A DNA stretch of 64,000 bases from Thalia democratica. Its lineage: Eukaryota. Of this stretch, positions 56,101-63,202 are shown piece by piece; positions within the stretch are counted from its first letter, which is position 1, and every line of letters begins with the position of its first letter. The stretch is from positions 26,784,001 to 26,848,000 of the forward strand of contig OZ241827.1 in assembly GCA_965202585.1 (NCBI GenBank), in the 5' to 3' direction. The position numbers and the translations under genes are program-made. The notes beneath the pieces are model-generated. The model saw nothing but the letters and a program-made list of their open reading frames with translations, was not told where the DNA came from and made no database searches.

Positions 56101-56782
56101 TTAAAAAGCCAGGGTCTTTCAAAATGATACATGAGGTAAACTGAATAAAATGCTAGTCAGTTTCGCTTTAAATTTTGATGCAAAAAAAAAAAAGCAAATT
56201 CTCAGTATGAAGTGCATACAATAAAAAAAAATTATGCTAATTTTATAGAAAACAAATAATGAATAGTTTTTTATTTTTTTATTTAAGAAAATTATTTTTG
56301 GTTAAAATAAAGCTAACTGTTTGATTTTTTTTCTGTATGTTTAAAAATTAAAACCTTCGACGATAAAGTATCTAAAATAACTAGCAATTAAATATTTCTT
56401 TCGAACAATAATTACAAACAAAATACAAAAGAAACGTCAAGAAACTGTAAATCAAAAATAATACCAAACACAGTGAAAATTTACAACATATTTAATAGGT
56501 AACTTAAAAAACAAAATACAAAACCATTATTTTAGAATATTTATTATAATTCTTTATATTATATTATTTATAATATTTATTATTATAATGTTTCTTATCA
56601 AACAAGCAACCTTTAAATATTTTCTCAACTACAACATTTACTTACAGTTTAACAGTAATATAATCTTACTAAAAATAAACAAACTTGTTTGATAAGCAAA
56701 CAAACAAAAAGCCATTTACCCTACAAAATCAGAGACAAACTTTAAGCCACTGTTTTGTGAGTAACAAAATTTTGTCAAGCAT

Positions 56783-59700
56783 TCAAACAGAAGAAGATCT
56801 GTTTCTGCTCCCCATCTTTTTCATCTTTTTCCTGACGATGAAGCTTCCGCTCGACACCCGCTTCTCCGCAATCAGCTCCTCCACCGCCAGTTTCTCCTTG
56901 ATAATTTCGTTCGCTTCCGTCTGAGACTGCAGCTTCAGCTTCCTGAACTTCCTCGACAAGTTCTTCCTCCTCAGGAACCAGTGCTCCTTCACGTGCCTGC
57001 CGAACCTGTCAAAAAACAAGCCTACTGACAATTGACAAGACCTATAACAATTAATTTTTTGCTTACTTATAATATTTAAATATGTGGTGAAAAGAGATTT
57101 AACAAAGGAATCAATTAAAATCGAAGACCCTTATATTGAAAACGTTTATCACAAGTTAAGCAGTATTTTTCAATTATGACAAACCTTTTCAGACGTATCT
57201 TCAGCGCCTCCTCCATGGTGTCCGGGGCGAACGGGCCTTCCTTGTAGTGAACGTCGTGGTAGGCGGCGGAAAGCCACTCAAGCATGAGCACTATCGTGCC
57301 GACGAGCATGCCGGCCGCCATCAAGTAGAAAATTCCCGCCAAATCGCTGACCGTTAGCTGGCGCACGTGATCCGCGTCGGCGTCGCAGAGGTTCTGCCAC
57401 GTGATCTCGTACTTGTGGCTCAGAGCTCGCACGTATCCCCGCTGCACCAGCTTGTCAAAGTAGGAAGAGAACTCTTGCAGGTGGGGAAAGTTTTTACTGA
57501 CGGCAAAAGCGTACTCCATTCCGGGAAAATTCGAGCTGGACACCGACCTGAGCTTGCACCCGCTCTGCCTCTCCGAGTGCTCCAAAGACACAGAGTCCCA
57601 AAAGAAGGCAAACTTTTCAGTCATGGATTTTTCAATGCCTTCGTCCAGGGAGCGCAGCACGACGTCCTCTTTTTCAACGTCGTAACCGAGATCGACTTCT
57701 CGCATCAGGGCGGACACCGAGGAATCGGCCACCGTGCCATAATCGTAATCCGTCCTGGACATAAGGTCGGCCACGCTGTCCATCCAAGTAGTCTTGGGGC
57801 GGTCGTGCCGCGACAACGCGGACACCATGTTGGCGGTGTAGTGGGCCACCAGTACCACCGAGCACAGGTACCAGGCCACCGTCAGCACCCGCTGGGACAT
57901 GGACCTGGGCACGGTGTCGGGCGACTGCCAGAAGAGCGCGGCCCAGGTGAAGTAGAGCGCGTTGCTCATGCACATGCCCCTTTCCGCTTCTTGCCTGGCC
58001 GACGCCAGCCTCTTCTTGTTCCAGTTGGAGGTCTTATGGAAGAAGTGGCCCCTGTTACCGTACGGACTGATTTTGGATAGGAAGTTCAAGAGGCTGGCCA
58101 CTAAAACGACTGATATCACGATTGCGAGGTACAGGTCGAGTGTGAAGGGGCTCATGAAGGCAAAAGGGTTGTACTCGAAGTCGGGCTGGTTCTCTCTGCG
58201 GTAGACAAACTTTATTTCGATGTTCATGAAAGCTGGTAAGAAACTGACTGCCGTTTTGCGCTGGGCGGTCACCGTCAACGGAGCGACGATCAAATCAACC
58301 TCGTCCCTCACGAGGCTGCCGACCATTCCGCTCCACGCGTTGGTCTCCTCGTCAAAATCTCCGAAAAATCCGTCACCAACCAGGGTCACGTTGTAATCGA
58401 AATCGCCGATTGCGGCAAACGCTTGCAAAAGCTCGATGCAGAAGCCGTTAAACTCGGAATTGTTCGCATCGTATGTGACAAAAGGCGCTTCTACAATTGT
58501 CACGACCCGCAAAAACATTTTCCCATCTTTAAACTCTTGGCTGCTGTGTCCTAAATTCAAAGAGGTGACGTCAAAAACAATTGGTTTCTCGGCGTTTTGG
58601 AGAAGCTGCACAAACTTGTAGTGGTGGTTTACAAACCAAGAAATACGGATCGGAGTGATTCTGTTACCAGTTGCGTCGAATTGAATTTTTTCAAGGCCGT
58701 ATATTGTTTGGTTTATCAAAGACTTCTTTACAAGGTCTATATCAATCTGTTACCGAAAACTTTAATCATAACAAACTTGTACATAACTTATAAAAAGCAA
58801 ATCTTACCTTAGCTTTTGATGTTTTAAAATTATTCAAACTAATTGCAGCAAGAACTATAGCGTCGGTAAAGGCAAATATTTTATCCATGTTGGCAAACTT
58901 GTAAGCTGGCAAAAACCGGCTCGATTCACTAACCAAAGATTTAGCTTCAGTTTCCTTGCTCACATACTCCGTAGTAAGAACGCCTGAAGTTACAGTTTTA
59001 TAAATAACTAAAACACTGTTTTCATATTCTCTAAACTAAATATCAATAATTGTTAATAATTACTCTAAACCAGGGTTTCCCAAAGTGGTCCATTTAGTCC
59101 TTTGGGGCGATAAGCTGGAAAGGGAGTAATGGGGGCGCACTAGTAAAAGGGCCATATAAAAAATTAGATACATTAGATACAAAGGGCCATATAAAAATTT
59201 TAAAATTACACTAGATAAACTGTGGTGTTTAATGAGCGGAGGCAATCATTTATTAACTTCTGAAAAGGGGCATTTTTGAATTCGAGTTTTGGAAACCCTG
59301 CTCTAAATTTCTCAAACGTACTAACAGTGTACAGTTTGTAAAAATTATTTAAACTATTTTTAATTAGCTTATTTATAAATATTTTTTCTTTATATTGCAG
59401 TTTTTTTTAAACCGAAAAGTTTTATCTATTATCTAATCATTAAAATTACGTAATCAAAGTTTTATAATTCAAGTTTTATGAGAGCTTAACTAAAACAGGC
59501 ACCAACTAAAACTTAAAATACAAATTAGAATATTATCTTATGCTTATTTTGTTTAAACTATACATTAAAATTAATAGAAAATCTAATACTTTTTAAAATA
59601 TTTTTTTAATTAGTTGATAGAAAATTCTATATAAATCAATTTTTAGTGTTAAAAATTTCAAAACTTTAAGTATCTTTTTTTAGTAGTTTTATTATACAGT

Positions 59701-61308
59701 TAGTTCTTAATTTTTTTACATACTATCATACTGTTAAAACTTTTGATTGTATATGGCTATGTTTTGTATACAAAACTTTAAAACTAATTGTTGATAGGTA
59801 AATAGAAAAGAAAATATTGCGAATAAAACTATCTAAAAACATATTGTTTTTTATATTTCAAACTTGAAACAAGACAAACTAAGAAAAAAAGCAAATACTA
59901 AATCGTTTCAAATTAGTAAATTAAAGTTTAAGATACGCTAAACTAGCTGTTGAATAACAAAAACTTTCACTTTATTGTTACAAAAATAACTTAATCTTTA
60001 AAACACAGAGAAAAATTACCAAACCTGAAAGTTCCAACTTTGTTAATTCTAGTTCTTCATTGTTTTGAGTAGCGAAAATCCAACCATTTGCACAAGTTAT
60101 ACCTAAATTATACGCTTTTGATAAAAACTCAATTAGGCACGGTCTATTTAAAACTACCATATGAGGGTTATATTTTCTTAACTTTCTGAGACTTTTTGAT
60201 ATTTCTACTCGGTCACAAACCTCCTGAAAATATTAATAAAGTAAATTATGGAAATGATTTCAGATAATTCGATAATATAATTATCTTTAACTTAATTTTA
60301 TTATACTTTTGTGACTGATAGCTAAAACTTTGTTTTTTATCAAATATAATTAGTTGTACTTTTGTTTAATTTCTTAAGTTTCATTTTTACAGTAAATAAA
60401 AATAAACACACTTTAAAGTTTTGAATAACTTCTTCATGCTTACTTTGTTAAGTTTTACAGTTATCATAAACTCATCAAAATGCACTTGCTTTTTTCAAAC
60501 TTAGTACAGATGCATCTAATGTTCATTTAAAATTTTATCCATGGTATACTATTTATTTTATACTGGATAATTCTTAACATAAAATAAAAAAATTTAGTAA
60601 TTGATATAATCACAGAGTTACTTATTGCGCGAAAGTACAAAAAAACACCAGTGCTATTAATTTTGTAGAACCTTGAAAATTGATTAAACCTTGTAATATA
60701 TTATATCATGCACTTCTACACTGTTGTTTTCGTTTTTCAACATTCCTATGCTAATCTGAATCGTTCTAGCAAAGTTCATTCCTTTTTCACTGTCAACTGT
60801 CAAAATGGATAACTTATCAATTCCAATAAAATGTGCGATTTTTGGAAATATCTACAAAACAGTTGAGTATTAGTCTCGATCACAATTGTAATGTTAAAGT
60901 AAATAATAACATAGCTTTTAAAAATGATAAGAAAACTAAATTATATATTAATAGTTAAAGATAAAATCTTTATAATACTTACATTTAAAAAATTATAAAT
61001 TTTAATTTTTAAAGGCTTGTACAAAAATAATTTATGAAATTATACGAATAAAATAGTCTCAGTCAATAACTTATTTATACAAACGTATAACTTTCAATGC
61101 AAGATATGTTTTGGTATGATTTTTTGTGTTTAAATACACTTTAAATGATGATTGTATTTAATTGTATTTTTAAACAAAAGCATACTTTTAGTTCATTATA
61201 AATTGAAGATTTTAAATAAACTACATTCCTTTCAACTTTTGGATAACATAAATCACTGGCATTTGGTTCAACTACTGAAACATTGTAATATTCTGCTAAA
61301 ACTTCATT
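56783..61308 (-). CDS. Divergent ionotropic glutamate receptor subunit (non-NMDA architecture; delta/GluN1-like ligand residues); 5' end incomplete
   Basis: Phase-consistent minus-strand exons: 61308-61186, 60851-60690, 60223-60025, 58983-58808, 58746-57185, 57005-56783. S1 has VVTIVEAPF, WSGMVGSL and APLTVTAQR. M1-M3 include PRSMSQR and HYTANMVSA. S2 has YGTVADSSV and FAFFWDS. M4 has LAGIFYLMAAG. The C-terminus is -SSSV. Upstream small exons encode an ATD-like region (FLSKAYNLGITCANGWIF). Confidence 0.92.
59071..59300. mobile_element. hAT (Charlie/Buster-type) MITE, 230 bp, in an iGluR intron
   Basis: TIRs CAGGGTTTCCCAAA and (reverse complement) CAGGGTTTCCAAAA. The 8-bp flanks are CTCTAAAC (59063-59070) and CTCTAAAT (59301-59308). 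Confidence 0.88.
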
Positions 61309-62256
61309 CTATAAAAAACAATACAATTGTATATGAAGCACCAATTTCGTGCTAAAATATTTTTATGCATTTATTAAAAAAAATTTCTTAGTTTTTTTTT
61401 TATGTTTTGTTTGAGTTTAATAATTTCGAATAGCTCTGTGAAAGTTTACAATACAAAAAACATTCAAGTTTTACTACTTATTTGTTAACAGTTAGTTAAG
61501 AAGTATGTAAATAATAAAATCTACAATTATTATAACTTTGTTCTATCATGATAAGTAGCTATTAAATTACTTTTGTTTAAATGCTGTGTTTTTCTGCTTT
61601 AGAATAATAAAACAGTTTTACAGGATGTAATATTAATGTTCTTCAAATTATACATTTCACTAAGAAAATTATCTATAAATATAAATGAACCTTAGAGTTT
61701 ATGAAAGTTAATTAACAACAAGGCTAAAACAGAATGAGCAAATATTTTTATTTGTTTAAGAAGATAAATATATTCTATAAGAACTTTATTAGTTTTTAGT
61801 TTCAAAACTATACAGGTGCAAAATATAAAACTATAAAAAGGTAACACAATCTTAATTCAACAAATTTTACAAAACATTTTTCAATTGTATTACTTTTGTT
61901 TTAAGCTAAAACGTTATTTACGTTTGTTGACAAACTTTTCTTAAGTTAATTTAAATAAGTAGATTGTATTTTAATATTTCAAAGTTAGGTAATTCTATAT
62001 ACTTTAGTACTAAAATAGATAGCTTTTGTTTTACATTAAGAATTTCATATTGGTCTATCTATATTTTACAAATGATACTAGCAAGTTTTTCATTGACAGA
62101 ATACATTTAGAATGTTACTTAAACAAAATACCATGTATAAAACTTTAAAATAATTTTATTTAAATCATGCTGCACTTTTAGATGTTGAAATCAATTAACG
62201 TAAATAAAATGACAAAACAACTAATTTTGTACTCAAATACTTTATTGACTGAAAAC

Positions 62257-63202
62257 GTTTCGCTGATCTATTTTGAAAATTTTGTCTCTGTTAAGCTGTT
62301 CAACTAGTGAAACGTTGTTGGTCAATAAAGTATTTGAGTATAAAAACAGTTGTTTTGATTTTTCGAAGGGCCCTGCTTGTAGTGATTTTGAAGATTTAAA
62401 GCCTTATTATATTATAATTCATTACAAGATACTAAGAGTACTTATTTAACTTTAATATAATTACACTAAACTCTTTTAATACTTAAAATCTAAAAAACTA
62501 ACTTTCATACCACTATCAACCAGATTTGACAAAACTAGTATAGTAGTATTTTCACTATTTTCTTTTTCAAGTTCTTCATATAACTCATCATTTATTCTAA
62601 CACTTCTGCATTTTTTTTTTTAATTTGCAACATAATTAGTTTACTTAAGAATAACTATTCATATCTTAAAAGGAAATTTTAATACGTTTTTAAATTTAAT
62701 GTAAAGTTGAGTTGTTCTATAAAGCACTTACTGTACACTGTTTTTATAATATGTCATTTAAGTTTTAGATATGTTTTACTGATAACAATCTCAAACAACT
62801 AACAAATAAGTGTGTATACTTTAAGAGGTCAAAAGATTCTTTTAAGCTAAATGGTTATATTGTTGGTAATATATCAAAACTAAAAGTACTTTTCAAAGTA
62901 GACATGAGCTATATACCATGAGCCTTTGCTAATTAAGTATTTTCACTAAACTCAAGTGTACAACATACAGTAAAATTTAAAGACACTTTATTTGAGATTA
63001 AGGTTTTGGACTATAATAAAACCTTTGTATAAGTTTTTTGAATAGCAGAGACTTTTTGAATACTAGCTTTTCTTTAAAGTTTTAATACAACTTTATTCAA
63101 ACGATTCAGTGATTTGAAGTTCATTTCAAAACTAGAGTTTTGCAGTGGTATTACTACCAGTGCTATTAAGACAGGTTAAGCTTGCAAAATCACTACAAAT
63201 GA
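62257..63202 (-). CDS. Tentative further 5' exons of the iGluR (63202-63158 and 62402-62257)
   Basis: AG/GT borders and phases that join in frame to the 61308 exon (ICSDFASLTCLNSTG / FKSSKSLQAGPFEKS...KIDQRN). There is no recognisable homology and the donors are weak. Confidence 0.35.

Follow-up and report, generated by a model that had tools for sequence, protein, structure and literature searches.

The minus strand of a 64,000-nucleotide stretch of the Thalia democratica genome (contig OZ241827.1, positions 26,784,001 to 26,848,000; hereafter the window, in whose coordinates the exons and motifs are given) carries a spliced and expressed gene for an ionotropic glutamate receptor (iGluR), whose located exons lie within 56783-62619. 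The gene is the pelagic-tunicate orthologue of Ciona intestinalis XP_009858118 and lies in a tunicate-wide clade with receptors of Clavelina and Styela. We consider it likely that it encodes an expressed tunicate iGluR core of the Epsilon class, predicted to act as a cation channel gated by small neutral amino acids and to bind polyamines at a ring of tryptophans. The Epsilon orthogroup was already known; what is new is that a Trp at the Q/R/N site, along with a remodelled, Lurcher-tolerant gate, is common to the Epsilon receptors of tunicates. Tunicates are the closest living relatives of vertebrates, and in them the Epsilon class persists as a conserved, expressed clade of two paralogues, in which a GluN1-like glycine pocket is joined with a pore and gate unseen in 137 other compared iGluRs.

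The open reading frame (ORF) at 57115-58719 on the minus strand (534 codons) translates to an iGluR core. Pfam matches were obtained to Lig_chan-Glu_bd (PF10613, 2e-28), Lig_chan (PF00060, 2e-21) and SBP_bac_3 (PF00497), and the best PDB matches of the ORF were full-length GluA2 and GluK2 (about 1e-46, residues 70-483), so that the iGluR match is far beyond chance. The expected architecture is complete, with an S1-S2 clamshell split by M1, M2 and M3, an M4 after S2, the S2 disulphide, the acidic residue at 705 and the YTAN core. HMMER aligned the protein to GluA2 without a gap from the M2 helix to the PRS motif, and a MAFFT alignment of 151 iGluR sequences yielded the same columns: Trp falls on Q586 (the Q/R site), Ser on G588, Asp on D590, S-S-V on G653-S654-T655, and W-D on L704-E705. 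The R485 position retains its Arg, which is invariant in the 151 sequences. In alignment A2, R163, C397, C454 and Y303-T304-A305 are invariant and N306 is nearly so. An AlphaFold2 model of the core, built on a 54-sequence alignment (predicted local distance difference test score 86.5), has a pore helix at residues 260-271 and places W273 after the end of that helix at 271, at the loop tip. The top Foldseek matches of the model in the PDB were chains of GluA and GluK comprising the ligand-binding domain (LBD) and the transmembrane domain (TMD), at about 1e-30 (GluA2, E=1e-30), which confirms the fold and cannot separate iGluR classes; an ESM Atlas look-up returned only generic clusters of iGluRs and of ionotropic receptors (IRs), with no class information. 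An earlier note on this stretch, made from the letters alone, had drawn attention to five motifs (APLTVTAQR, GTVADSSV, FAFFWDS, ALFWQSPD and HYTANMVSA). All five were found in the minus-strand translation, and the pore tip and M3 gate that it had called non-canonical proved, in the 151-sequence alignment, to be so and to be conserved within the tunicate family.

The interval 57185-58746, which the earlier note had set as the extent of the feature, is exactly one exon of 1562 nt. Its coding sequence runs from the last part of the amino-terminal domain through S1, M1, the M2 pore loop, M3 and S2 to M4, as supported by the ORF, Pfam, the PDB alignment, RNA joints and the AlphaFold model. In the genomic DNA its edges are an acceptor AG before 58746 and a donor AG|GTTTGT past 57185, and both junctions are present in RNA contigs. 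Four marine metatranscriptomes were among the public runs containing this stretch, and their contigs (90-99+% identity, mapped to 56400-62300) skip five GT..AG introns on the minus strand, at 57006-57184, 58747-58807, 58984-60024, 60224-60689 and 60852-61185. The ratio of non-synonymous to synonymous substitution rates (dN/dS) against the Tara Oceans metagenome contig L007 (protein P0001, 96% identical) was 0.23, and the relative seen in the environmental contigs differs by in-frame indels only. It could be supposed that the gene is a decaying or unexpressed copy whose odd motifs stem from relaxed constraint; its gate does differ from SYTANLAAF at 5/9 positions, and its composition is odd, with 72% GC at third codon positions (GC3) in an AT-rich genome. 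Against this stand the intact frame over seven exons, the spliced transcripts, the dN/dS of 0.23 and the retention of the odd residues in relatives only 32-52% identical, three ascidian species among them, which leave decay a negligible probability. The gene is real, spliced, expressed and under purifying selection, and a decaying or silent copy is excluded.

Relatives were sought with an exhaustive HMMER scan over 1.84 billion representatives, which recovered a discrete family of about a dozen clusters at 272-904 bits; the next scores were about 200 bits and levelled off near 150 bits. The named members, Ciona intestinalis XP_009858118, Clavelina lepadiformis XP_076820266 and Styela clava XP_039256569, are all ascidian. 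A search restricted to M2-M3 again returned only Ciona, Clavelina and Styela proteins plus unnamed marine or eukaryotic assemblies. No vertebrate member of the Epsilon class was found. Database names such as "glutamate receptor 2-like" and "kainate 2-like" mislead as to both the ligand and the class of these genes. Two Ciona Epsilon receptors were listed by Ramos-Vicente (2018), whose tree places GluE1_Cin in Epsilon (ENSCING00000019514; 927 residues, signal-peptide cut at 20-21, amino-terminal domain of 375 residues and an unusually long TMD of 164 residues). The 927-residue isoform of the XP_009858118 cluster (P0011/P0156) has a signal peptide that ends at residue 20, an S1 that starts at about 393 and a lengthened M1-M2 linker, and we take it, by inference, to be GluE1_Cin. 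An orphan class, as entertained in the earlier note, is at odds with this match of the Ciona member to a catalogued Epsilon receptor. The Thalia protein is 44% identical to Ciona GluE1 over the LBD-TMD region and shares with it LFWQ(S/T)P(D/E), YTANMV, S(S/A)V, WDS and an extended linker between M1 and M2. In the Ciona receptor, by contrast, the Lurcher position is Ala, the pore tip reads WQTPE, with Thr and Glu, and the C-terminal -SSSV is missing. GluE1 of Ciona is known as a catalogue entry, and no paper on its pore was found in the literature.

A tree of 63 rows and 437 columns was computed with IQ-TREE under LG+C20 with posterior mean site frequencies. It recovered the tunicate family (support 100/98) and the grouping of this family with a second Ciona protein, XP_026694371 (P0073; 100/99). 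The clade termed AKDF, which comprises Delta with the Ciona delta-1-like protein, AMPA and kainate receptors (95/98), excludes the family, as do the AMPA and kainate clades within it (both 100/99) and the GluN1 clade (100/100); the ctenophore sequences took no firm position in this tree. The markers of AMPA and kainate receptors (G-S-T, (L/M)-E and Gln or Arg at the Q/R site) are replaced here by SSV, WD and Trp. The earlier note had named two outcomes that would tell against it, placement among AMPA/kainate receptors and an unexpressed, decaying gene; both were looked for and neither was found. Amphioxus GluE1-type sequences are the nearest non-tunicate neighbours in the tree, and two clades of amphioxus, hemichordate and crinoid sequences carry the features of the published glycine-gated amphioxus GluE1 (S653, W704, Q586 and an acidic 590). 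The amphioxus sequences differ from the tunicate family at three points: alpha-F reads S-Q-P, the Q/R/N column is Gln, and the gate is a canonical YTANLAAF. Epsilon is the best-supported class label, resting partly on the literature, and the trees are compatible with more than one deeper position of the family.

The class proposed in the earlier note was a delta-related one, that is, a GluD-type subunit whose ancestry and SxV/WD pocket are shared with GluD. S2 alone did score best against the GluD2 LBD in a PDB search (30.8 bits), and SSV/WD resembles both the SAV/WD pocket with which GluD2 binds D-serine and glycine and the SSL/WD of a GABA-gated starfish GluD (GABA, gamma-aminobutyric acid). 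All of these S2 scores are weak, however, and the first is nearly tied with the ctenophore Epsilon receptor ML032222a and with GluK2. Ciona has a delta orthologue of its own (delta-1-like, P0039), which falls with the Delta clade (99/96) inside AKDF and apart from the family, and the approximately unbiased (AU) test rejected a grouping of the family with Delta (p=0.023). Since the same pocket motif occurs in GluN1 and in Epsilon receptors, it is no marker of delta ancestry, and a delta origin must be regarded as most improbable. A phylogenetic check of the kind suggested along with that proposal was therewith run: it established membership of the tunicate clade and turned Delta down, and it was compatible with a sister position to NMDA1 or to AKDF.

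A closer competitor is descent from the NMDA lineage by way of a strongly diverged branch, in which a GluN1-like, glycine-binding subunit acquired a remodelled pore. In its favour, eight of nine pocket residues equal those of GluN1, the Trp of the M2 helix (FTW) is common to NMDA1 sequences, a DRP motif follows M3, and GluN1s are among the best non-tunicate matches (Lingula GluN1 scored 189 bits, and bird GluN1 was 33% identical). The AU test did not reject a grouping with NMDA1 (p=0.34), and no separate GluN1 locus was detected in exon-by-exon scans of this genome, a search that can miss genes with small exons and therefore gives a lower bound and no proof of absence. On the other side, the best tree groups the family with Epsilon-like deuterostome clades and not with NMDA1, the published tree puts the Ciona orthologue in Epsilon, and the GluN1 pore and gate are missing: Trp replaces the N-site Asn, the loop is one residue shorter for want of the extra residue of SGIGEG, and HYTANMVSA stands for SYTANLAAFLV, whereas all NMDA1 rows keep the Asn, the longer loop and SYTANLAAF. 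An NMDA origin is accordingly judged unlikely, and the Epsilon assignment is retained in what follows.

The ligand pocket was compared position by position with GluA2. In S1, the motif APLTVTAQR (58258-58284, minus strand) keeps the equivalents of P478, T480 and R485 in both the GluA2 and the MAFFT alignments, and Y450 of GluA2 corresponds to Phe. In S2, the alpha-F motif D-S-S-V (57715-57726, minus strand) puts S-S-V on G653-S654-T655 and the beta10/alpha-I motif FFWDS (57592-57606, minus strand) puts W-D on L704-E705, and the hinge residue Y732 is also Tyr here. Every position but the hinge, which is Phe in GluN1, is identical to bird GluN1 (P0082) in the alignment; in the numbering of the GluN1 glycine site (F484, P516, T518, R523, S687-S688-V689 and W731-D732), all residues are matched. 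Within the family the pocket is strongly kept, with S653, V/I655 and D705 in 14/14 members and W704 in 12/14. The meaning of the alpha-F and beta10/alpha-I motifs was taken from Wang et al. 2026 (PMC13648236) and from PMC6307864. In the former, the first residue of alpha-F was never Gly in a glycine-selective receptor of the set, SSV and SAV were "typical glycine-selective motifs", WD was common among glycine receptors, and the exchange of GST for SSV in GluA2 shifted its preference toward alanine and glycine; the GABA-gated GluD of the starfish Acanthaster carried SSL with WD, and prediction from motifs often failed. GluE1 of Branchiostoma lanceolatum, which has the same Ser 653, Trp 704 and acidic 705, is activated by glycine and not by glutamate. 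Since eight of nine pocket positions agree with the glycine site of GluN1 (F, P, T, R, S-S-V and W-D), the predicted agonist is a small neutral amino acid, with glycine, D-serine or alanine somewhat better than an even bet, GABA possible at a low probability and glutamate less probable again. The earlier note had read a glycine/D-serine- or GABA-type signature here, with Val and W-D in S2 as in GluN1 and GluD receptors. The motif itself holds, SSV with WD being of glycine type and shared with GluN1 and GluD2; the delta class deduced from it does not. The subunit would form tetrameric cation channels opened by a small neutral amino acid.

The pore-loop tip reads LFWQSPD (57916-57936, minus strand) and is aligned to GluA2 without gaps; the TGG codon at 57928-57930 places Trp at the Q/R/N site and an Asp follows at +4. 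Trp occupies this column in 12/14 members of the family and in 2/137 other iGluRs, the two exceptions being P0056, of the GluE2-like tunicate branch, and P0130, an unidentified long-branch sequence. The acidic +4 residue is kept in all 14 members, and the equivalent of Gly588 at the tip is lost (Ser in this protein). Apart from the N-site Asn, the longer loop, the canonical gate, the hinge Phe and the separate position in the best tree, vertebrate GluN1 is alike in its pocket and in the Trp of its M2 helix. Among Epsilon receptors the Q/R/N site was already recorded as variable: Ser, Ala, Leu and Gly occur there, and Phe has been claimed for amphioxus. No report of Trp at this site in an Epsilon receptor was found in the literature. 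The nearest functional precedent is an engineered one: the point mutant Q590W of the kainate receptor GluK2 (GluR6), in which a Trp at the Q/R site likewise accompanies an acidic residue at +4, forms a functional channel. Its Kd(0) for spermine is 190 pM, 6.6x10^3-fold tighter than wild type, and the site was modelled as an aromatic cage (PMC2217257). The laboratory mutant keeps Gly at +2, whereas in tunicates the Trp occurs naturally, is conserved and precedes Q-S-P, and it offers a direct physiological counterpart to the mutant. By analogy, the Trp ring together with the Asp at +4 would form an aromatic cage that still conducts but whose affinity for intracellular polyamines is higher by orders of magnitude, so that inward rectification would be extreme. 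The testable prediction is a picomolar-type polyamine block in tunicate Epsilon receptors.

The bulky Trp at the pore tip and the loss of Gly588 could also be taken to mean that the subunit does not conduct alone and is either an obligate heteromer partner, for instance of a Trp-bearing paralogue on contig C5 described below, or a non-ionotropic organiser like vertebrate GluD. The very divergent amino-terminal domain fits such a role, as does the presence in the same genome of that other paralogue, whose pore reads MWQSPE and whose pocket has A-E in place of W-D. GluK2 Q590W homomers are functional, however, and the acidic +4 residue, the M2 helix and YTAN are strongly conserved, as for a working pore; we give this alternative a low, though not trivial, probability. 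Since the mutant both functions and binds spermine tightly, a conducting, extremely rectifying, polyamine-blocked channel is the better prediction than a dead pore.

The M3 gate, HYTANMVSA (57817-57843, minus strand), departs from the canonical SYTANLAAF by L6M, A7V, A8S and F9A in addition to its first residue. The family reads YTANMV: all 14 members have Val at position 7, where 119 of the 137 other iGluRs have Ala. Position 8, to which the GluD2 Lurcher site A654 maps, is Ser in five members including this gene, Ala in five, Thr in three and Gly in one. The change at this position is of the kind seen in GluD2 Lurcher A654T, with Thr itself in three family members; GluD2 belongs to another subfamily, and changes at position 8 here always occur together with A7V and L6M. 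Judged from the alignments, the gate is altered clade-wide and the Lurcher-type Ser is a species-level variant on that background. Together with the Lurcher-position Ser, A7V would probably shift the balance between closed and open states in one direction or the other. A natural Ser or Thr at this position offers a way to learn how gate stability is compensated. A search of the genome for a coding pattern of YTANMV gave 6 matches against 2 control matches and was uninformative.

Other iGluR loci were sought exon by exon with Pfam and protein scans of the 802-Mb assembly, in which genes with small exons can be missed, and the three loci found are a lower bound. The first is the gene under study. 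The second (C2:41125209-41131775, L003/L004, at about 41.13 Mb) encodes a canonical SYTANLAAF gate and a GST motif of glutamate type, is 50% identical to the Ciona delta-1-like protein in M2-M3, and contains the only uninterrupted YTANLAAF-coding site found in the genome. The third is an Epsilon-type paralogue on the minus strand (C5:57457720-57468499; L005:2729-9185) whose pore reads …AGLMWQSPESVPRAP…, with MWQSPE at the tip, and whose gate is TSYTANLVAIV. Its Q/R/N site is likewise Trp, its beta10/alpha-I ligand site reads A-E, and its closest relatives are P0056 and Ciona XP_026694371. Because this paralogue also has a Trp pore, the Trp pore appears to predate the split of GluE1 and GluE2. 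The iGluR repertoire of this genome may be very small. In a bolder and rather doubtful scheme, GluE1, with its GluN1-like glycine pocket, and GluE2, with its A-E pocket, would assemble into an "aromatic-cage" heteromer serving as a two-ligand, voltage-dependent coincidence detector that stands in for NMDA receptors; near-irreversible polyamine block would there replace Mg2+ block, and Lurcher-type gate residues would be tolerated.

Several points weigh against an Epsilon channel gated by small neutral amino acids. XP_009858118 was matched to GluE1_Cin by its length, the place of signal-peptide cleavage and the sizes of its domains, and not through an accession cross-reference. In the tree, the link of the family to the two amphioxus/hemichordate/crinoid clades is weak (63/93), and besides NMDA1, a grouping with AKDF also withstood the AU test (p=0.15). 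The tree set comprised neither independently labelled placozoan, cnidarian and amphioxus Epsilon references nor GluN2, GluN3, Phi and Lambda. Motifs are an unreliable guide to the ligand in Epsilon and AKDF receptors, as the authors of the motif study themselves warn. The RNA evidence is from environmental samples and stems mostly from a relative that is 90-95% identical, with only 4 contigs at 99% or above. Finally, at least one further 5' exon, with the signal peptide, is expected and was not found, so that the 5' end of the gene is incomplete.

The amino-terminal-domain exons were missed both by tblastn of distant full-length iGluRs against the window and by a genome scan with PF01094, and were therefore located from RNA joints. 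All are on the minus strand. The last of them, at 58808-58983, is defined by the RNA joints 58983|60025 and 58746|58808 and has the donor GTAAGA at 58807. The exon at 60025-60223 (…AYNLGITCANGWIFAT…) has RNA joints and a tblastn match to residues 165-219 of the Clavelina orthologue (E=5e-5), and that at 60690-60851 has RNA joints on both sides and a weak tblastn match to residues 176-192 of Ciona GluE1. The exon at 61186-61308 is supported by the RNA joint 60851|61186 with GT..AG ends and by its open frame (GC3 7%). A loose end of the RNA contigs at 61308 matches 62503-62532 with one mismatch and thereby places a further upstream exon at 62503-62619, whose 3' end is fixed at 62503, whose 5' end can reach at most to 62619 by its open frame, and whose reading frame is continuous with that of the exon at 61186-61308. 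The C-terminal exon (56783-57005), joined to the core exon in RNA over the intron 57006-57184, ends in …RSSSV with the stop at 56783-56785 and is homologous to the uninterrupted tails of the relatives P0003 and P0005. The six defined exons join into an unbroken frame of 814 codons up to this stop. The -RSSSV end is a class I PDZ-ligand-like tail (56783-56800), shared with P0003 and absent from the ascidian orthologues; it may dock to PDZ scaffolds.

This architecture also bears on a chemosensory role convergent with protostome IRs, which the earlier note had raised. Divergence from the synaptic classes is all that speaks for it; in a filter feeder of the plankton, a sense for dissolved amino acids would be plausible. 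Most IRs have lost both the amino-terminal domain and the Arg/Thr/Asp triad; here the domain is spliced in and the triad retained, and the PDZ-ligand-like tail is a further point of difference. The idea thus found no support and is very unlikely.

A sharp step in GC3 runs through the exons of the gene at 56783-61308, from 7-36% in four amino-terminal-domain exons, through a rise from 45% to 89% along the large exon, to 79% in the last exon, while the flanks and introns have about 20-25% GC. The Tara relative L007 has the same step and the contig of P0003 reaches a GC3 of 88%; the locus of P0005 differs, at 37%. Localised GC-biased gene conversion and a history linked to intron loss are candidate causes. 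In the environmental relative, an in-frame insertion of 6 nt (GTTGCG) was seen at 57381, in the loop before M4, where P0002 also has extra residues, and this loop looks like a tolerated indel site. A 3.1-kb metatranscriptome contig of high depth (run X1, about 575x) touches two intronic spots about 2 kb apart, at 59593-59613 and 61605-61622; the probable cause is a short repeat, or else some abundant but unrelated transcript with about 20 nt in common.

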